Source: Geosiphon pyriformis uo1 | Taxonomy: Eukaryota; Fungi; Glomeromycota | DNA: 64,000 bases | Direction: 5' to 3' | NCBI GenBank assembly: GCA_016748015.1 | Contig: JAAOMT010000706.1 | Coordinates: 390,219-454,218, forward strand | Shown: positions 12,294 through 58,743 of the stretch, one piece after another | Layout of the letters: every line of letters begins with the position of its first letter | Numbering within the stretch: position 1 is the stretch's first letter | Program-made: the position numbers and the translations under genes | The notes under the pieces: generated by a model | What the model was told of the DNA's origin: nothing | Database searches by the model: none | The model's input: only the letters and a program-made list of their open reading frames with translations

Positions 12294-12769
12294 ATTGTTA
12301 TATATTTAGCTCGAAAACACTTTTTAACGCGTGGTAGAGAACGTTTTTGTTTCCAGTGTGCTGCTTCTTTCGGATAATGCAACTACAGGGAGGTTTCGAA
12401 AGCAAACAGCCACCCGGTATGATATTCGAGAAGACACGGTTCGAAAAGGGGAATTGTTTCCTAATAAGTAAAGATGGTCTCCAAATATGGTAATACAAAA
12501 CGTCCAAGAAAAGCCTCGTGTACAAAAACAAACATTACAGCAATGTTAATTTCAAGATGTACTGTTTTAATATCTGACATTACTGATCCCGATCGACACT
12601 TTTAAATGATCGCAGAATAGTTGATCCCTGATGCTTTTTTCGTAGATTTTTTTTGGTTTCACCGGGCAAAAAAAAAAATTTTTTATAAATTTTGAAAAAT
12701 ATAAAATAATTACGTTGTCTTTAAAATAACTCAACAGAATAAATATTCGGAGTTTAAAGGTCATAAAAT

Positions 12770-12832
12770 CATGATGATGATAATAATAATGATGATAATG
12801 ATGATAATGATGATATAATAATAATAATAATA

Positions 12833-12867
<35 letters not shown>
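12770..12867. repeat. (ATG/ATA)n compound microsatellite
   Basis: Directly visible; it produces the spurious poly-H/Y/I ORF 12761-12958. Confidence 0.95.
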
Positions 12868-13930
12868 CTCTATTAAAATCAACAGTCATAAAAGAACAAT
12901 AGATTAGATATTGATAAATTAATATTATTAGCGATTTAATATTAATGATCAAAAACAATATAATAGTTTGAAGAGTTATATTATTTTTGAATGATTAATT
13001 AATAGTAAAATAAAAATTAGTATATATAAAAATTTATTTTTAATAGAAATTGATTTATTTATTATGTAATTATTATTGAAAATTCCCGAAAATAAAAATT
13101 CTTTGATAGTTAGATTTCTTACATAATTTAATTTTTGAATTTATATTTTTGTTGAATAAATATATTTTTTGCAAACTATTTTCGCATAACACAATTGTTA
13201 CACGCCTTATATATATATATATATATATATAATAAATAAATAAATAAATTTTAAAATCTGTTATAATTTTTTGTTAATTATATTAAAAAATAAGTTTAAA
13301 AAATTTAAAAAGATTGTTATTATTAAGTTAAAAATAGTTATTGTTTATATATATATTAAATTATGTTTATAATTGTTTTTATTGTATTTAGATTAGATAA
13401 TAAAAATTTTTTATTTTGTTATAGGAATTTTAAAAAAATCAAATTAAAATTTGTTAACTTATAACAATATATTCATATTTATTTTAAAAACTTTAAATTT
13501 ATTATTTTTATTTTTAAGCCATTTGTTATATTTAAAATTAGTATAAACTGTTTTTTAAATTTAATTTTATATATGTTTAAGCTATTGTTTATTATATTTA
13601 ATAAAAACTTTAAATTTTAAATACAAAAATTAATTTATTTAGTTAAATTATATTTAGTGTCTTTTTCGTGAGTAAATGAGTAATTTTTGGGGCGGGATGG
13701 TTCCGGAGAGTTAAGGTTTCCAAATCCATAATATCAATTTATCATCGAAAACGATGCTTGGGATGCTGTGAAATCAAGGCTCCGATTAATCATGGATATT
13801 TAGTTGAATATGCATGCATAAAGTATATCTCAATTTTTTCGCTCAAATTTTCGTGATCATACAGGAGATACATTGTTTTCACATATAATTCCTGGTTATC
13901 TGTTATAACTGAATTTTGAAGTTTTTCAAA

Positions 13931-14280: not shown

Positions 14281-15136
14281 AAAATACTATCGGATTTATT
14301 CTAGGTAATAATATAAATCATATAAATATTTACCTTTCTTTTGATTCAATTTTGACTTAAATGACTTACTTGTTTTTTCTATAAAATTTATAGTGGCATT
14401 ATGCTGGGGTTTCACAAACCCATTCATTAAACGTGGTAGTGCTGGATTAGAACGTATTCATCGAGATACGTGGTTCAAGCAAACACTTGCCGAAGTCTGG
14501 TTTTTGTTTACGCGGTGGCAGGTATATTTTATTATTATTATAAGCATCAAATTATAGAAGGTTTACTTTCAATTAAAGAAGATTATCTCCATATTTTTTT
14601 TAAGGATGATGGTGATTATGTAATAGAATTTCTGAATTTTTTGTACATTTTAATTTTAAACATATCATAGTATATTATTCCGTTACTTTTAAACTTGAGT
14701 GGATCAACAGTTTACTATATTACCTTGGGGCAAGCTGGTGAGCATATAATTCTAATATTATCTTTTTACTTTCGAATCGATAAAACTACCATATTTAAAT
14801 AATGAATGAGAATTTATAAATTTATCAATAAAAATTATTCTCATTAATTATTTCTTTTTAGATCTCTCACTCGCCGTACCAATTACGAATTCACTCACTT
14901 TTATATTTACCACTTTTGCGGCATGGATTTTAGGCGAGAAAGTTGGAACAAAAGGTCAAATTTTAAAATGATTATTTATTAATCTAAATTTGATTTCCTG
15001 ATCTTTTGATTTTTTTAAAACATAAGGTATTTGGATTGGAATGTTCATGGTTGTGGTTGGTGTAGGATTATGTGTTCAAAGTAAAATTGGTGCTTCTGTT
15101 GAAATTAAAGATCCTTTATTTACCAAAGAATATTAG
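14281..15136 (+). CDS. TMEM234: Transmembrane protein 234 family (small DMT-superfamily membrane protein); first exon and start codon not resolved
   Basis: Spliced product NTIGFILVALCWGFTNPFIKRGSAGL...RWQ|YIIPLLLNLSGSTVYYITLGQA|DLSLAVPITNSLTFIFT...LGEK|...GMFMVVVGVGLCV. These motifs are characteristic of the family. Missed by the ORF track. Confidence 0.88.
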
Positions 15137-15385: not shown

Positions 15386-18300
15386 ATGTCTTTAGAATCG
15401 ATTTGCGATGAATTCATTGAATCCCACCCACATTCTCTTGTATATTTGCATAATCGATTGCTATTTCTCTCTAGTTATTTGTTTAAAGATGAACGCATAT
15501 CATGGCTTGTGTTTTTAAAAGATCTATGGATGCGACAAGCTTCATCGACCCCCGGTAAATATTTTCCTCCTTTTGATCGTTTTGATTCGTCTTTTTTGAT
15601 ACATTATCTATACCCTTTTTTCTCGAAAAATCATATCCTAATGAAACCAAATTTGAACAGAAAATTTTCGTATCGCTATTATAAAAAGTACCGCAAATTA
15701 TATCAAAGGTCAATTAAGTCCAAAACCTCATTCAGTCATCGATGATGTCCCATTCAGATTGATTCAAAATGATCTCGATTTTTATGTTACTCGCATGATT
15801 TCTGTGCCTTATTGTCATTTATCAAATGAACCAGAAAATGGAAAATCAATGAAAGAGACAAATGAAATTGAGGAGACATTCGATGTTACCGGAAGGTATT
15901 TTAAATTTTTAAAATGGTCTCATAATTTAATTTTCAAAACTTCTAACAACCAATGTAATCATCAATATCAGTCTCTTTCAAGATTTACTACCAAAGAGGC
16001 AACCAAAATTGACAGATCCAGAAATCTTAATAAATCTGTTATCACTTTTCAACTATCTTGGATTTCAGGCTTGGGAGGAAATTCGATGGAACTCATCTTT
16101 TCCTTTAATCATCATCAGCCTTGCTTCAAAATTAATATCTTCTGGTATATTCTGATTAATAATTCAATCAAAGTTTTATTTAAATAAATTTAATACTTTA
16201 ATTTTTTCTTTCTTTCTTTCTTCGAAAGAATTTTGGGAAAAAATTAAAGACGATCCTAACACAAGACATATCTGTAGATATAAACTTGAAAATCAAAATC
16301 AATCAATCCCATCGGTATTTCCTCGATTTTTTTCCTGCTTTTTTACTTTGCACCTGCTGACATAGTCAATTTTTATTTGATCAAAGTCCGATTATACTGC
16401 TGAAAAAAAAAAGATTTGCCACCAGTAAGAATTTTACATGAACTTTTTTATTGATTCCAAAAATTTCATGTAAACCTACCGTTTTAGATTAAGAGATCTC
16501 AAAAGATACCTGGCTGAAAATGCTCAATCAGAGAGTGATCCTAATGAAGAGCCCCTCACATTCCATGAAACCACATTCATGAAGATATTTTGGAAGATCT
16601 ATCGTCAAATTAATGTTAACCAGTCCTTTGGACATTATTTACAAAATTCATTGGATGAACCAAATTGGAAAAACACTCGAAAAGGACACGATCAGTGTCT
16701 CAAAAGTTTGTTTCGGATGATTATTCTTCGATCACCAGGATACCAGTCATTTTTGAAGCTGATGATACAATTCATAGATCTAATAGCTGGGTAAATATTT
16801 TATTGTTTAAATCTCTGAAATATTCGACAAAATATGCGCTAAATTTATCCCCTTATTAGAAGGGATGAATTCAAGATTGATTATTTCACAGAATTGATTG
16901 TACATCAGGGATTGCAGCTTGAACTTTACAAAAGTATTAAAAGACTTGTCACAATATTTCTTTCAAAAGATAGGTTGATTAAATCGGAAGTGGTTTCTGT
17001 AAGCCAAAAAATTTTATTCTCTCCTATGATACGCTTTTTTTCCTGACCTAGAAATTCAACACCGAGTCTAAATAGGACTCGGTCAATTTGTTCTTCAAAG
17101 TTTTGCCTTGTCTCACACGAAGTGAACGCCTTCATTTACGGAATCAGATTTTCAATGATAGGTAATGAGGTTCTATGTTTAAATGTATAATTGAAATTGG
17201 ATAAAAGGATCTTAACATCTAACCTGGAAATTAATAGATCATTTGAATTGGAAATCACCACGCCTATTTTCAACACTTGGGAAATTTGGCCGTTTGATTT
17301 CGACAAGCGTATCATCAGTGTTTGTAATAAAATATTATCTCCCACTCTCACACTCGATCGAAGTTTTGAAGATAAGGGTGGTCATGACTACGATGAAAGA
17401 TTTCTTCATAAAAAAGCTACCAATACACAATTAGACGTTGTTGATTCATTAATCGAGGTAATCTTTAGATACAATGTTTAAAGATTCAATGAATTTCAGA
17501 TGAAGCTTTATATTAGTAATATTAATTTTTTACATTTTATTAATTCTTTTATAATTAAACCGTAAAAATAAACTTTGCTTAGCTTTCATTCATTTCGCCA
17601 TACCACGTTTTGGAAGAGCTTATAAAACAAACAATATTAAATAAAGGCCAAGGACCTCTCATCCTTGATATTCTATGCCAACTAGGAAATCTATGTTGGC
17701 TACAGCCAAAATCAGGTTCATCTAGATTGTTAATAATTGTATTGGAAGATATTCTTGAGAAAATTGACGACGGTTTGATTCAGCTGACCGAGCAAGAAGC
17801 AAAGAACTGGGTGGAGTTTGTTACGCACGGAATGCTGGTATCTTCGAAATGAATTTGATAAAGAATATCACGACTTGTTTCAACCCTAGAATATTTTAAT
17901 TGTTATTGAAATCACTTTTCTACAAGGGGGACTCGGGGAAAATCAATATAAATATAGAAGATCTTGAGATCGATGATTTGTCTGGAAAAATTCTTGATTT
18001 TCGAGAATACGTAAATCAATGTTTGATTCCTTTCCTGGAAAGATATCAAAAATCTGGCAACACCCATACAACTTTTTCTCTGTCAATCGCTACGCTTCAA
18101 AATTTACTTCAATCATTTCTTTCCAAGCCAAGCGTTCCCGAGGCATTTTGGCTTCTCTTGGTCAAACCTTATCAGCTATTGCATTTCTTGGGATTATGTT
18201 TGGATCAACGGCAATCCGGGGCTCTGTCAAGTATGAAGCAAATTGACGATATTTATGTGCTAATGAAAGATATTATAGAAATATTGGGGCAATTGATGAA

Positions 18301-19776
18301 GGAGATTTCTTTGGATTCCATGGAATATTGTAAGTTTCCCATGGCTCAATTTCTTGATTAAAGATAATTAGAAATTACTAATCTTTCATAAATTTTCAGC
18401 TATTCTTCAACGAAATGCTGACAATGCTCACCGTCTTTATAAAGATTCCAAAGATTTGGGTGATTACATATGTTAAGCCATTGCAACCGATCTGAGTCAG
18501 TAGTATTACAATTTTGCTAAATTTTCATAAACTTTTAATCCAGATTGGATGACTCAACTTCTCTTGAGACCCTTTTTCGAAATGTGTTGTGCCGTGTTTG
18601 GTTTTGAGCTTGATCAATTAGCGCTTCCTGCAGCCCTCATTTCTTTCTGCGAAATATCGACCGATTATTTGTCAATTGATGAAGAAAAGATGGAAGGAAA
18701 TCAAGCGATTATTGTACAGCAAATGAAAAAAATGATGCTATTTCTTGACGGCTGTCGTGTGTCTGATGATTGGTTGAACTATTTCTGTTCGGCATGTATT
18801 CCTCTGTGAATCAAAATCAAAATCAAAATACCATTATCATAATTTGTGATCCATGATACAATTAGGCACTTAACAAGGCGAAGAATATAACTCGTAGTAA
18901 TTTACGGGATCTTTTCATGAAGATTGGTCCATTTGCTTTTTGTGCTACTCTATCATCGAGTATAGGGGAGGAAGCTCGACGGCTATTGAATAACTTCTTA
19001 AAGAAATTATTTTCTTATGGAATGTTATCCACAACTGAACTATTGATGATTTTTAACGAGAATCAATCAGAGTTGAATTTCCTCGTGATCGAATCACTTG
19101 ATATGTCAGGTGAGTATTGAGTAAAAATATATTGATCTCGGGAAAAATTTTTGTTCTCCCTATTTATTTTTAAAATATTTTTTGTTGAAAGAGCGCATAC
19201 AGCTAGCTTCCTTAAGATTCTCTACAATCAAAATTTTATCTTGTTTGAGAAAGCTCAGTTATTTAAAAGAATCTGCCTCAAACTCCCCATTGCAAGAACA
19301 GGGTATCAATGATATTTGGATTGTGCAAAACATTGGAAAAAACATCAAGGTAGACCTAGCTTTTTATCTCATTTTTTATCTTAGAATTGAAAAATTCTAC
19401 TTATTCTAAAAATCATGATTGTCGACAGATTCTTGTTCCTTCATCTGCCAGTTTAAACTATCTCGTATTGGCTTTCGTTTCTATCGTCACTGGACTAGAG
19501 ATGCTTGATGACGCATTACCTAATTCCAGGGAGATCCTATACATTTGTTTATTAAGCATTGTAGAAATATTGGGCGAACGAATGCAACAGAAAAGACGTC
19601 AAAAATCAGGTGAAAAGGACATTAAAGAGAGTCCAGATAATATTTGTCATCAACAATGGAGAGACAATTTATTATTTGACGCAGTTGGGCGAATTAAGGA
19701 AGAAGGAGGACGAAGCGCCGTTATTGGAGGTTTGAAGTTACCACGTAGTTTGTTTCCAAAACAGAATCATAGATGA
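15386..19776 (+). CDS. GEMIN4: Probable Gem-associated protein 4 (Gemin4)-like helical protein, roughly 1000 aa, multi-exon
   Basis: A chain of GT-AG-joined exons. Blocks in colinear order resemble human GEMIN4 as I recall it: ICDEF..[97 protein letters not shown]. The gene is certain; its identity is not searched. Confidence 0.65.
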
Positions 19777-21463
19777 TATGAAAATCCTGATTTGAGTAGA
19801 ATCTTTAGAATCGAAGCCACCACTCGAATTTACTGGTACACAAAACAAGAAATTGGTAATTTCGCCATTGCTAACTAACCAATAATTCCCAACTTATGAT
19901 CATCAGCATAAAGATAAAAATAAGGCTTGAACTCGCATAATTCACAGAAAGATAATAAGGTCAAGCTTGAAATTTCAAAGTTATTTTTATAAAAATTTGT
20001 GACTAAATGTCGATGATGAGAGGTGCGATTTGTGAAAACGGGTGAGCCAAATAAATCCGCATGCTGATTACAATTTCAATTTGCAGCTTGGAATCCCGAA
20101 TAGTTTGTCCCACAATTATTGTTCAACATGCAAAACAGTTATTTTTATCTTATGAAGTCTATATATATATATATATGCATATTATTGATTGTTTTGGGAT
20201 TTGACCGAAACTTACGGAATAATTGATGTCCAGCTTGTTTTATTAATATGCCGAGATTCAACATTGAGCTCAAATGAATTGCTGTTTAATGTGAATCTCC
20301 TCAATTATTGTTTTTGAGTGGTTGAAGGGGGAAATATCAAGTTAAAAATTATCATATGTTTTTGATTCTGACAGTAAAAATAATTACTGTCCGAAGTTGT
20401 ATGTAATATCTTTCTGGTTACTATATTTGTTGTACAATTATTCGACACACAATGCAGTCCGGGTATCCTGAAACCCGTTAATTGAAACATTCACTTACTG
20501 TAGTATAAAAACGTATTGTAAATCCAATCCATACAATAGAATAAATATGAACGCGAGGTTGAAATTTCGTTTTATTTTTTTTTGTCTTTTTTCACCTAAT
20601 TTTCCCTTCATTCGCGGTTGGATGACAGGAGCATCCTTAATATACAAATTTTAAATTGTATATTCCCATATTCCTAATTTTTTATTCTCCTTACACAAAT
20701 ACACGCGTCACATACATACTCACTTAATTTTTCGTTATCAAACAATTCATTTGTCCTATTTTCTCTTCATTCCTTCTCGCTCTCACTCTCTTCACTTTCT
20801 TTTAAATTTTCTGGAGTGTGTATCGCACGCTCTTTTCACAAAATAAAACTTCACTGTAAAACATCCCTGACAAAGTTTACATCTTCCCTTTTTTTCCTTT
20901 TTCCTTTTTCCACGTGTTATACTTTATATTTTTTCTAGTCGTCTTTTGAATCTTTCCCAAACTACACCACGAACCACAATATTTCCTCCAAAAAAAACCC
21001 CCCTTCTACCCTAACACTTTTTACGAACTATTTTGCTTCTCTCTAATCCTCCACTTTAACTTGTGTACCCCTGACATACTTCTCATTTAACCTCATGCCC
21101 TGACTCTTTCGAGTGTAGAGTGTTAATATTAAAATAAAGATATCCCAACCTCTATTTTGTATATTTTACCTTGTAAATTCGGTCCTCACTAAGGGTAAGT
21201 TTTATATTTTTCTATTTGAATGCGGCTTTTTGGTCATATGAAAAATGCTAAGCAACTTTTTTTTTGATTTAATTGCACACATATTTCACCTTTAATCATC
21301 ACTCCTTTACAACTTTTCCATCAACCCCTTTCTCAAACTCTCATCTTTACCTCTCAGACACTTCAAATAGATTTTTAATTTAGCATAGAAGACATAAGCG
21401 TGGCATAACGTTATTTATTTATTTATTAAACATTCAAAATTACATAAATTCTACTCAAAAAGT

Positions 21464-28012: not shown

Positions 28013-28905
28013 GGTGTTATTTATAATGCCGATCTTTGATTAGCTTACTTGATATACCATGCTCTAAATGTTTATGAAAATATTCAGGTGGGGGCTTTCG
28101 TTTGGGGCATCCATTAATTCCGTTGGCAGCATTTGTAGAATGGTTGAAAATATGGAAAAGGAATCATAATGTTAATGTTCAAATCTTGTCTTTAGAATAT
28201 CGTAAGTTTTCCATGAGTTAGAAATAAATTCAAAAATCTCAATAATTATTCACTTTTTTCACAGCACTTGCACCAGAATATCCATATCCTGCCGCAAGAG
28301 ATCATGTGATCGATTGTTACGAATGGTTAATCCGTGACCGAGGTCTTGACCCCTCAAAGATTGCATTCGCGGGTGATAGCGCCGGCGGAAATCTCGCAGC
28401 TGTAACCACATTAGAAATGATCAAACGTCGAAAAAATTCAAATCCCCTACCACTCCCTGCCGCTCTTCTCCTCATTTCACCTCTAGTCCACACAGCAACC
28501 AGTGCCAATTCATACAATTTCAACGAAGCGAACGATATAATCAGTCTCGATTGGATGGATGGATGTGCGGATGCTTATGCTGAGGGTACAAAGATCTCTC
28601 ATGAATCACCAGAAATTTCTCCTTTATTGGAACCGGATCTTAGTGAAATCCCGAGATTTTATGCATGTGTCGGAGAATATGAAGTGATGCGAGACGATGT
28701 GATAGCTTTTGTAAAGAAAGCTAGATCCCAAGGTGTGGAGGTGGTGTTAAATGTGGAAAACGCGAATTTTCATAATTTTGCTGTCGCCTGGTCAATTTCA
28801 AGGAATGGAGCTTATGAAAGAACTGCATTGAATATGGGAAAGTTTTTGTTTGAAATCCCTTCTAAAAAATTATATTGTGTTGTAGAAGGTCAGATCGGTC
28901 AATAA
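27435..28905 (+). CDS. Alpha/beta hydrolase, hormone-sensitive-lipase (Abhydrolase_3) family esterase/lipase
   Basis: Four exons. Motifs YTH|GGAF, LEY|PLAPEYPYPAA, GDSAGG nucleophile elbow, LISP, GEYEVMRDD and FHNF. Confidence 0.92.
27960..28012. repeat. (ATT)n microsatellite in an intron of the hydrolase
   Basis: Directly visible. Confidence 0.95.
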
Positions 28906-32300: not shown

Positions 32301-34810
32301 AAAAGGGCTTATATCAATTGTCATTTAATGTGTCAATTTCTTCTAACCACTCTAACTGATAAGGACGAAGCTTCCAAATTAAAGTGGACCCTTCTCAGCT
32401 ATCCCCTGGCAAATTATATTATGCCGAAGTGCAGGTAGGCCAAAAAATTCTGCAGAATCTAACCTTTGACCATCAATGCTAAAGTTTTAATTCTTAGGGT
32501 TATGATACAAGCACCTCATCTCCAGTCCCGCTATTTAAAGTACCGGTGACCATTACCAAACCGTTAACGTTGACTAATGGTAGCAAACTTTCTCTTGGTA
32601 CATTGTCTTTTGGACCTGGGCATATTGAGAGGCACTTTGTAAAGGTTCCCCAGGGTGCCACTTTTGCAGGTATTCTTTCGCATTTTCTGCTAAACTTTGT
32701 ATTTAGCCAAGCAAAAATGAATAAACTTATTGATTCCCCCCACAAAAGATATCATCATCAAATCTTCTGCAACTCACGCTACTGATCCTGCTCGCCTCTT
32801 GCTTCACATGATTCAACTCTTACCACAAACTCGGTACTCAAAAAACCAGCATGCGTACGTCTTTTCCTTGGGAAAAGGTAGTTATGGCGATTTAAACGGG
32901 GAAGAACAAATCGAACAAAGATCTATTGCAGTTCGTGGTGGTGTAACTCTTGAGGTCCGTGTTTAATTTACCAAAAGACCCAAAATTGGTCTTTTCATTT
33001 TTAACCTTATCAAATATCTAGATTTGTCTTGCCCAATTTTGGTCTAGTCCTGGCAATCATACAATCTCCTTCGAAATTACTTTCCATGGAATTCAACTTG
33101 CGAATAATACCACAAATGCAGATAATATTGTATACATCAATGGAAATAATGCCTTCACTCGTCTGAATATCGTTGCTCCAGTGCGAAGGGAGGATGAGAT
33201 TAATCCTTTGATAAGTTTTCGTATGTGTATTTATTAGCTCTTTTATGACTTTCAAGGTGTTAATTTACCTATAATTGATTAAAATAATAACTTTTTCATA
33301 TTATTAGATGCAATTCGTAAATTTCTTCGTCCAGTCGAACATATCTTAAAACCTCTTAGTCCAGAACGAGATACCTTGCCTAACTCGAGGCAAATTTATG
33401 GACTTCAACTTACTTACACATTTAAAGTAAATGAAAAAAATACGAGCGTGACACCAATATTTACCGCGTTTTTCGACTATCTCTACGACGCCTATTTTCA
33501 AGATTTTTTCGCCATTAGTAAGTCTTATGAACTGTGTGATTCAGCACCCTTATTAATTAATAAGCTATACGTTCTTCTCAGTATTCGATGCGAACCAGAG
33601 GCCACTCGGTTACTTGGATATATACGCAAAGAATTTTAAACTGGAGGCGAAAGGAGACTACACAATTCGTGTACAAATCAGGCATGATTCTCAGGAACTT
33701 TTAGAAAAATTCATTAGCACCATCTGCTTGTTGGAAATTACTCTCACAAAAACAAAGGTAACCCTGGATATCTTTGCTCAAATCTCGGACGTTTACGCTT
33801 CAAAAAAATCAGTCTTTGGCCGAAGTTTCCTTGAAAAAGGTGAACAAAAAGCCTTGTTTGTTGCGTCTCCAACCGACCACAGCGTATTTCCAAAAGAAGC
33901 GGAGGTTGGCGATCTTTTGGTTGGCAACTTGAATCTTGTGAGCACATTGAAAATTGACGGTGGTCAATTGAAAGTACTCTTTGTTATTCCACTTCCCCCG
34001 GTCAAAAGCAAAGAGTCCACACCAGTCGACAAAATCAAAGAAGTCTCCTCAGGATCTAAAAGCGAGGAAATAATATCTCAAGAGTTATCCGACTCAATCC
34101 GCGATACTCAGATCACTTATCTCTCCAAATTCCCGGCGGAATCTATAGCTCGTAAAGAATTATTCGAGGAGCTCGAGAAGAATTACCCATCCCATTTACC
34201 TTTGTTGCAGACAAAATTAGAATTGCTGCTTGAAACATCCAACGGCAACTTGACACCTGAAGTTGCTCAAGAAGTGGTTGAAGTTGCTGAACAAATTCTC
34301 AACAATATAGACTTGAATGAATTATCTACATATTATGGTCTCAAACAAGAATTGACCAATGAGACGGCTAAAAAAAGGAAGAAGGAAGCCGATGAAAAAA
34401 AGAAGGCTATTGTGATTGCATTGCGATCCAAGGCACAAGCCTTGGCAGTTCTGGCCCAACAAACTGGGACCAATAGCAGCAGTATCGATGATTTAGCTGT
34501 GCAATTCGAACAAACCTATCAATCACTCATACAATGGGTTGATATCAATCTACCGACTACAGACTACAAAACCTTACTCGTATACTTGATTCGCGAACGT
34601 CAAGCACAGCGTTACGGCAATGCGATCAAGGCAATTAACCAATTCCTTGCGGAACTACCACTCACTAAAGAAAATTTAAAAGATACAAATAAAGCCACAT
34701 CTTTTCAACTTGAGTTATTAAAAGACTTAGGGTGGAGCGTTTGGGTAACACATGAAGAAAAATGGAAATTGATTCGTGCACCACCTGGTGGTTGCTCTCC
34801 TTTTTATTAG
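29320..34810 (+). CDS. TPP2: Tripeptidyl-peptidase II (subtilase S8), highly multi-exon
   Basis: N-terminal [10 protein letters not shown]|[13 protein letters not shown]. Catalytic motifs [29 protein letters not shown] and MNGTSM|SSPN, followed by the TPPII central and helical C-terminal regions. Confidence 0.97.
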
Positions 34811-57312: not shown

Positions 57313-58743
57313 ATGCCTAAAGGGAGCTCACTCTCAAAAGATTTGGGCTTCGTCTTTAATAATCCTCGCTACAGCGACGTTCGTATAGTATGTGATCAGA
57401 ATGAAGTACTTTTCGGTAGTCGAACAATTTTGGCAGCTCGTTCTGAAACATTCGACAGCATTTTATATGGGGTAAAGATTGCAGAAAGCTGTCTTCCATT
57501 CGAAATCTCCTTTCCAGACATGAAAGCTTCAGCGATGGAAGTGGTCCTCGAGTTTATTTACACTGGAAGTATGAGAGAAGAGTCGATTGAAAATCCTCTC
57601 GACGCAATTGATGTATTTTATGCTGCAGAATATTTCCTTCTCCCAGATCTTCAAGATTGCGTTCTTAAGTATATAAAAGAATGGTTAAAAGAAAATGACC
57701 ACAATTTAGCAATTGAACTTTTAGAAAAAACCACCCAAAAAATCATTTCAACGTCCTCAGAAAACAAACTTCTAAATCTCTTGACTTCCCATATTGCTGC
57801 AACACCTTTAGAAGCTTTCGAGTTCGAATGTCTCACATTGACCAATCTACAAGTTTTGCTTTTGCACACTCTTAATAGTGAAACATACTTTGCTACTTCT
57901 GAATACGATGTTTTGCGGTATATAATTTTTTGGGGAGCGAGCCAAATTTGCGAAGAAGCCATTTCCTTCTTTGAATCTAGATTACCTTTGTCAGAAATAG
58001 CGGAACAACAATCAATCCCTCTAACTATCGAATTCATTCATAATCCCCATGAACTCAATAAATTTTACGAATATCAAGCAGCAGTTATAAATATTGTCGC
58101 ACCAATCCTTCGATATATTAATTTCGCCCTAATCGCACCCAATGTTCTTGCCAATGTCATTCACCCACTTGGAATTATCTCCACCCCAGTTCTTCTTGAA
58201 GCTTATCGATATCACGCAGGTTTTAAAAATAAGTCGAAAAATAGAAGAGGGGGTATTTCTTGCAGAATCGATGATCTTCGCTGGGATAACATGGCTTGTG
58301 GGCCAAACATTGAAATCCGTGATTATGGGACGCGAGTTCTTTGTACAAATAGCACGACCGTAGAATCAGTTCGTGGTGTTAATCTTTTATGGGGTAATGG
58401 GATGTACGAGTGGGACGTAATTGTTGAAGAAAAGAGTAGGTGTGCCTGGATTGGTGTTTGTACTGAAAATGTTAATTTCTCTTCATATTTGGGTCGACAA
58501 GAAAATATCTATGTTTTTGGTTCTGATGGTCAAATTTGGAATTCTGGAAAGTCGCACCGTTATGCTAAACCATTTACTAAAGGAGCAACTATTACTGTGC
58601 ATTTGGATATGACAAAAAGAACTTGTGCATTCTCGATCGACGGTGTTCGATATCCAGTGGCTTGGACGGATTTACCCGAAAAATTGTACCCTGCAGCCGC
58701 CATTTGGAAATTCGGTAGACTACGAATCAAGCCTCATACTTGA
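57313..58743 (+). CDS. BTB/POZ - BACK-like - SPRY (B30.2) domain protein, intronless
   Basis: BTB motifs NNPRYSDV...RTILAARSETF...LEFIYTG...AAEYFLLPDL. SPRY motifs YEWDVIVE...WIGV...ITVHLDMTKRTCAFSIDG...LYPA. Confidence 0.93.
   Translation: MPKGSSLSKDLGFVFNNPRYSDVRIVCDQNEVLFGSRTILAARSETFDSILYGVKIAESCLPFEISFPDMKASAMEVVLEFIYTGSMREESIENPLDAIDVFYAAEYFLLPDLQDCVLKYIKEWLKENDHNLAIELLEKTTQKIISTSSENKLLNLLTSHIAATPLEAFEFECLTLTNLQVLLLHTLNSETYFATSEYDVLRYIIFWGASQICEEAISFFESRLPLSEIAEQQSIPLTIEFIHNPHELNKFYEYQAAVINIVAPILRYINFALIAPNVLANVIHPLGIISTPVLLEAYRYHAGFKNKSKNRRGGISCRIDDLRWDNMACGPNIEIRDYGTRVLCTNSTTVESVRGVNLLWGNGMYEWDVIVEEKSRCAWIGVCTENVNFSSYLGRQENIYVFGSDGQIWNSGKSHRYAKPFTKGATITVHLDMTKRTCAFSIDGVRYPVAWTDLPEKLYPAAAIWKFGRLRIKPHT

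Follow-up and report, generated by a model that had tools for sequence, protein, structure and literature searches.

A split gene on the forward strand

The window analysed here, a stretch of 64,000 nucleotides from the fungus Geosiphon pyriformis uo1 (contig JAAOMT010000706.1, positions 390,219 to 454,218), carries on its forward strand a many-exon gene for a long helical protein, P0001, that is likely to be a distant relative of Gemin4, a protein of the animal SMN complex, and of the nematode protein EDG-1. The gene region is AT-rich, with a GC fraction of about 0.27-0.38, and its plus strand holds many short open frames. An earlier note, made from the letters alone, had read the fragmented frames between 15386 and 19776 as a single gene, and the exact mapping of P0001 (tblastn, with exon 12 at 100% identity) bears this out by placing the protein as 18 exons. 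The coordinates below derive from this mapping, for exons 1 and 17 together with the list of open reading frames, for exon 10 together with the Pfam scan and for exon 12 together with the protein search; the entry for exon 11 comes from the Pfam scan.

15386..20100, plus strand: whole coding span, 18 exons, product P0001 (1010 residues)
15386..15554, plus strand: exon 1, residues 1-56, start ATG and ICDEF block
15661..15895, plus strand: exon 2, residues 57-134
15999..16144, plus strand: exon 3, residues 135-183
16229..16314, plus strand: exon 4, residues 184-212
16387..16424, plus strand: exon 5, residues 213-224
16488..16694, plus strand: exon 6, residues 225-293
16739..16790, plus strand: exon 7, residues 294-311
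16876..16998, plus strand: exon 8, residues 312-352
17076..17161, plus strand: exon 9, residues 353-380
17238..17457, plus strand: exon 10, residues 381-454; the match to the Pfam family PF24293 starts in its last residues
17583..17837, plus strand: exon 11, residues 455-539; core of the PF24293 match, profile positions 151-218
17927..18329, plus strand: exon 12, residues 540-673; EYVNQCLIPFL and a 20-residue block (18146-18205)
18400..18459, plus strand: exon 13, residues 674-693
18460..18543, plus strand: GT-AG intron between exons 13 and 14
18544..18791, plus strand: exon 14, residues 694-776; a 12-residue block, followed by a GC-AG intron
18792-18865, plus strand: GC-AG intron between exons 14 and 15, the sole non-GT donor of the gene
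18866..19109, plus strand: exon 15, residues 777-857
19207..19349, plus strand: exon 16, residues 858-905
19429..19729, plus strand: exon 17, residues 906-1005; the frame stays open to a stop at 19774-19776, an alternative 3' end
20087..20100, plus strand: exon 18 (doubtful), 14 nucleotides, residues 1006-1010 of the annotated model

The introns, 16 of the GT-AG type and one GC-AG, measure 44-357 nucleotides. The predicted splicing rests on the deposited annotation, on canonical splice sites and on exon joins that align without gaps to the orthologues, as does the join of exons 14 and 15 over the GC-AG intron. The intron at 18460-18543 had been placed exactly, and its removal alone creates a 14-residue block (P0001 693-706) that spans the junction of exons 13 and 14. 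All Geosiphon blocks quoted in the earlier note recur in P0001 and in the order given there: ICDEF at 6-10, EYVNQCLIPFL at 566-576, the 20-residue block at 613-632, the 14-residue block and, finally, the 12-residue block at 721-732. The note likened several of these blocks to stretches of human GEMIN4 in the same order, a putative resemblance that may extend to their spacing.

At the 3' end, the note had closed the gene at 19776. The annotated model differs in that it splices from 19729 to 20087-20100. The unspliced continuation past 19729 reads ...SAVIGGLKLP... and aligns better with the orthologues' C-terminal ...NAVKQVLKPY... than does annotated exon 18, and therefore the stop at 19776 may be the true end of the gene instead of 20100. 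At the 5' end, complete orthologues extend about 100 residues further and carry in this extension a conserved LF(K/E)AWQQ motif. Upstream exons that could encode these residues were sought with no significant result, the sole trace being a weak FLFTRWQ at 14501-14521 (within 14393-14557; E about 0.9); the gene model may lack its N-terminal exons, or such exons may truly be absent. Upstream of the gene lies an extremely AT-rich stretch (12750-13650, GC 9-17%).

P0001 and its orthologues

A HMMER search with the exon-12 region (17900-18328) against 1.84 billion representative proteins returned one 100%-identical protein, P0001, and five weaker matches with E-values of 2e-10 to 1e-4. P0001 is NCBI entry KAG9286243.1, "hypothetical protein G9A89_014229" of Geosiphon pyriformis (1010 residues), and the three weaker matches that were looked up belong to the arbuscular-mycorrhizal genera Acaulospora, Racocetra and Dentiscutata. 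Word-based searches yielded further orthologues, complete or partial, in Acaulospora, Diversispora, Gigaspora, Cetraspora, Dentiscutata and Entrophospora. In alignment A2, these orthologues share 31-34% identity with P0001; all are unnamed and carry no precomputed Pfam domain; family members are 1010-1231 residues long. The word-based runs with alignment A1, with the whole length of P0002 and with residues 490-910 of P0010 returned proteins of Glomeromycotina only and no Gemin4, with the limit that one run missed known family members. Sequence searches of the PDB that started from exon 12 or from profile A1 gave nothing meaningful and no match to Gemin4.

Near the C-terminus, the family shows a Lys/Arg-rich patch (A2 columns about 1300-1310; P0001 about 961-970; window about 19590-19620), which reads KKQRKKK in Gigasporaceae, KKKRKKK in Diversispora and QQKRRQKSGEK in Geosiphon and has no counterpart in Acaulospora. 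The patch resembles a nuclear localisation signal and is followed by a conserved SEW...GIDKIKKQ segment.

A recurrent remote match to PF24293

The profile PF24293 (TPR_Edg1) is 397 positions long, has a curated gathering cut-off of 27 bits, and is carried by 94-100% of the members of the Atlas clusters named "Gem-associated protein 4". We scanned 12 orthologues, the nine proteins listed below, which include P0001, and three more distant Entrophospora proteins, in thirds against 24,736 Pfam models. In the scan of the middle third, which is the equivalent of P0001 300-545, PF24293 was the top match in all 12, with E-values from 4.1e-6 to 0.085.

P0011: E 4.1e-6, 26.3 bits
P0010: E 9.2e-6, 25.2 bits
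P0004: E 1.1e-5, 25.0 bits
P0002: E 3.8e-5, 23.1 bits
P0008: E 1.3e-4, 21.3 bits
P0012: E 4.8e-4, 19.5 bits
P0009: E 2.1e-3, 17.4 bits
P0007: E 0.085, 12.1 bits
P0001: E 0.012-0.023, 14-15 bits

The three Entrophospora proteins matched with E-values of 0.002-0.01, and exon 11 of the window taken alone (17583-17837) again had PF24293 as its top match (E 0.023, 14 bits). The matches are collinear: they occupy the same alignment columns and cover profile positions of about 38-218 of 397, reaching 276 in P0002. As a control of the same composition, the N-terminal pieces, the pieces at 545-870 and the C-terminal pieces of the same proteins gave no match to PF24293, and a compositional artefact is therefore less likely. 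The similarity, as read from these profile alignments, appears significant, reproducible and remote, and falls short of formal Pfam membership; what the scores miss is an operational threshold, not a biological criterion. A six-frame search of the genome with the same profile gave no match.

A search of language-model features placed Gemin4 clusters at rank 7 for P0001 (score 0.91) and at rank 14 for P0008 (score 0.90), a neighbourhood that we regard as a weak lead only.

A predicted all-helical protein

The earlier note had described the spliced product as a long helical protein, and the predicted models agree. AlphaFold2 built full-length P0001 from helices only (predicted local distance difference test, pLDDT, 56.8; predicted template-modelling score, pTM, 0.45), as it did residues 440-830 (pLDDT 67.8, pTM 0.69). 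According to these models, P0001 would be an all-alpha, HEAT- or TPR-like solenoid of about 1000 residues. Among the rows listed by the Atlas fold search with P0001:440-830 (pLDDT 68), one per set of families from the 30 nearest models, there was no Gemin4 cluster, in a search that misses about one third of true neighbours. The same list contained many MIF4G/MA3 domains (Pdcd4, eIF4G, DAP5, CWC22, UPF2 and CNOT1), aligned on residues 1 to about 220 of the model.

SMN-complex partners in the Geosiphon genome

The earlier note had proposed that the genome be searched for the partners of Gemin4. Genes resembling Gemin3/DDX20, Gemin5, SMN and Gemin2 were found, Gemin7 was marginal, and the Pfam models of Gemin6 and Gemin8 had no match in the genome, a result that says little for short, intron-split genes.

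L038 (G000:C726:6681-9968), minus strand: Gemin3/DDX20-like DEAD-box helicase gene with many short exons, identified by PDB sequence matches and motifs
L005/L006 (G000:C778:639031-642370, match 640531-640870): Gemin5-like gene, TPR_GEMI5
L001 (G000:C645:252347-252499): SMN Tudor domain, 33 bits
L002-L004 (G000:C595:98191-99205): Gemin2/SIP1 gene, 91 and 46 bits
L055 (G000:C733:824537-824680): Gemin7, marginal at 24.5 bits (cut-off 25)

The helicase gene was singled out among 52 Helicase_C matches in the genome and carries the motifs GYERPSPIQLKAIP, AQAKSGTGKT, LDEADKL and HRVGRTGRYG. For two of its exons (L038:2973-3134 and L038:2569-2673), human DDX20 (PDB 2oxc) is the best match in the PDB, at 37 versus 28 bits and 41.1 versus 21.7 bits; on the strength of these margins we conclude that the genome encodes a Gemin3-like helicase. 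In animals, Gemin3 is the direct partner of Gemin4 (PMC6385987). In the Gemin5-like gene, two neighbouring exons match TPR_GEMI5 above its cut-off of 33 bits, at 40 and 45 bits, and a WD40 repeat lies upstream of them.

A likely member of the Gemin4/EDG-1 family

On the basis of the profile matches and of the partner genes, we regard it as likely that the P0001 family is homologous to the Gemin4/EDG-1 family. With metazoan Gemin4 (GEMIN4; Gaulos/CG2941 in Drosophila), the fungal proteins share a length of about 1000-1200 residues, an all-helical build and a PF24293 match in the equivalent central region, and the Geosiphon genome likewise possesses genes similar to Gemin3/DDX20, Gemin5, SMN and Gemin2. 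They differ in their fungal host, in Pfam scores below the cut-off and in that the fungal protein is a putative member of such a complex, predicted from gene content. With EDG-1 (B0035.6) and HERD-1 of Caenorhabditis elegans they have in common the Pfam domain family, PF24293 being named after EDG-1; in contrast, EDG-1 and HERD-1 function together with PIWI/DEPS-1 and in Z granules of the nematode, and there is no sign of such a setting in the fungus.

Several observations weigh against this assignment, and most of them would also fit a different origin, namely an alpha-solenoid restricted to arbuscular-mycorrhizal fungi that shares no ancestry with Gemin4 and resembles PF24293 by chance or through the composition of its helical repeats. 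Every PF24293 score lies below the 27-bit cut-off (26.3 at best, 14-15 for P0001 and exon 11), and Pfam recognised no family when single exons or whole proteins were scanned. By sequence, in the exon-12 HMMER search and in the word-based searches, there are no relatives outside Glomeromycotina, and the whole-database HMMER search with exon 12 detected no pairwise similarity to animal Gemin4. The neighbours in the feature search are a mixture of large helical proteins (Med24, Med5, Nckap1 and NELF), with Gemin4 lower down at the two ranks given above. Likewise, the fold searches return generic HEAT/ARM/TPR solenoids: Foldseek with the full model against the PDB found karyopherins (Kap121 and CRM1) and other solenoids with template-modelling (TM) scores of 0.13-0.20, and the Atlas search with the 440-830 model found ZIP4/SPO22, C1orf112, CFAP69 and Vps35, all with TM scores below 0.5. 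However, a chance likeness of this kind would have to explain why one model of 24,736 tops the scans of all 12 orthologues in the same columns, five of them with E-values of 1.3e-4 or lower, why it never matches other parts of these proteins, whose composition is the same, and why Gemin3 and Gemin5, the animal partners of Gemin4, are present in the genome. We therefore consider an unrelated solenoid unlikely.

The Gemin4 orthologue announced in the earlier note is thus upheld in part. The collinear top match in 12 of 12 proteins and the partner genes speak for it, whereas sub-threshold scores, blank full-length scans and unspecific fold searches, in which the helical build recurs but Gemin4 is not singled out, hold it back. 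The gene structure, the helical architecture, the conservation among arbuscular-mycorrhizal fungi, the sub-threshold Pfam match and the partner genes are observed; strict orthology, Gemin3 binding, membership in the SMN complex and a function in small nuclear ribonucleoprotein (snRNP) assembly are inferred. We hold with moderate confidence that P0001 is a Gemin4-like partner of a Gemin3-like helicase in the SMN complex.

Alternatively, P0001 could be a true Gemin4/EDG-1 homologue that works outside the SMN complex, in another ribonucleoprotein or helicase pathway. In the nematode, EDG-1 and HERD-1 serve small-RNA pathways of germ granules rather than snRNP assembly, and the family is thus not bound to a single function; the role of human Gemin4 itself is described as unknown (PMC10470402); and the link between the fungal protein and SMN is one of genome content. 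On the other hand, the genome keeps a helicase similar to DDX20, the specific partner of Gemin4, as well as Gemin5, SMN and Gemin2, and it is in this company that a Gemin4-like protein fits most simply; a function elsewhere therefore seems improbable to us.

Other identities suggested by the fold searches were set aside: a karyopherin or importin-beta, for which the TM scores reach only 0.13-0.20 and the sole Pfam trace is a 14-bit Importin_rep_6 match in one orthologue; ZIP4/SPO22, C1orf112, CFAP69 and Vps35, as generic solenoids with TM scores below 0.5; and a MIF4G/MA3 protein, for which there was neither a Pfam match nor a fold match that stands out clearly from the background of helical repeats.

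Possible role and age of the module

If P0001 is a Gemin4-like protein, it would most likely bind the DEAD-box ATPase Gemin3/DDX20 and serve it as a scaffold or cofactor, as Gemin4 does in animals. Via the Gemin3-like helicase it would join the SMN-Gemin2-Gemin5 machinery, which in turn would load Sm proteins onto small nuclear RNAs. MIF4G/MA3 HEAT domains bind and regulate DEAD-box ATPases. The central domain of P0001 (about 440-660) is MIF4G/MA3-HEAT-like in the predicted model, and this likeness, together with the regulation of other DEAD-box proteins by such domains, suggests as a lead that it might act on the ATPase of Gemin3.

Gemin4 is essential in mice and flies. It has been described as metazoan, with early surveys finding it in Deuterostomia only and later ones also in insects (PMC6385987, PMC10470402), and its conservation is modest even among animals (PMC6385987). 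Fungi are credited with SMN and Gemin2 only, to which fission yeast adds Gemin6-8 (PMC10470402, PMC6385987), and within the collection of papers searched there was no report of Gemin3, Gemin4 or Gemin5 in early-diverging fungi. EDG-1 and its paralogue HERD-1 have been studied in Z granules (bioRxiv 10.64898/2026.10.06.756944).

Since a Gemin4-like gene occurs in the same genome as genes similar to Gemin3, Gemin5, SMN and Gemin2, the Geosiphon lineage has probably retained a complex of the animal type for snRNP assembly. More tentatively, and with rather less confidence than we place in the SMN role of P0001, we suggest that an SMN complex of the animal type has been preserved almost completely in arbuscular-mycorrhizal fungi (SMN with Tudor domain, Gemin2, Gemin3, a Gemin4-like protein, Gemin5 and perhaps Gemin7), that the Gemin3-4-5 module is older than the split of animals and fungi and was lost in Dikarya, and that the central domain of the Gemin4 family may be a MIF4G/MA3-like regulator of the Gemin3 ATPase. 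If this is true, the Gemin3-4-5 module was not added stepwise in Metazoa, the ATP-dependent part of snRNP assembly was already present in the ancestor that animals and fungi share, and its absence in yeasts is a loss. The value of the P0001 family would lie in a Gemin4 relative from an unexpected lineage that bears on the age of this module; in addition, such distant sequences would help to show which surfaces of Gemin4 are conserved and therefore functional.

Other genes in the window

Three further coding regions were noted elsewhere in the window.

28306-28905, plus strand: alpha/beta hydrolase (Abhydrolase_3)
33614-34810, plus strand: C-terminal part of tripeptidyl peptidase II
57313-58743, plus strand: gene for a BTB plus SPRY protein

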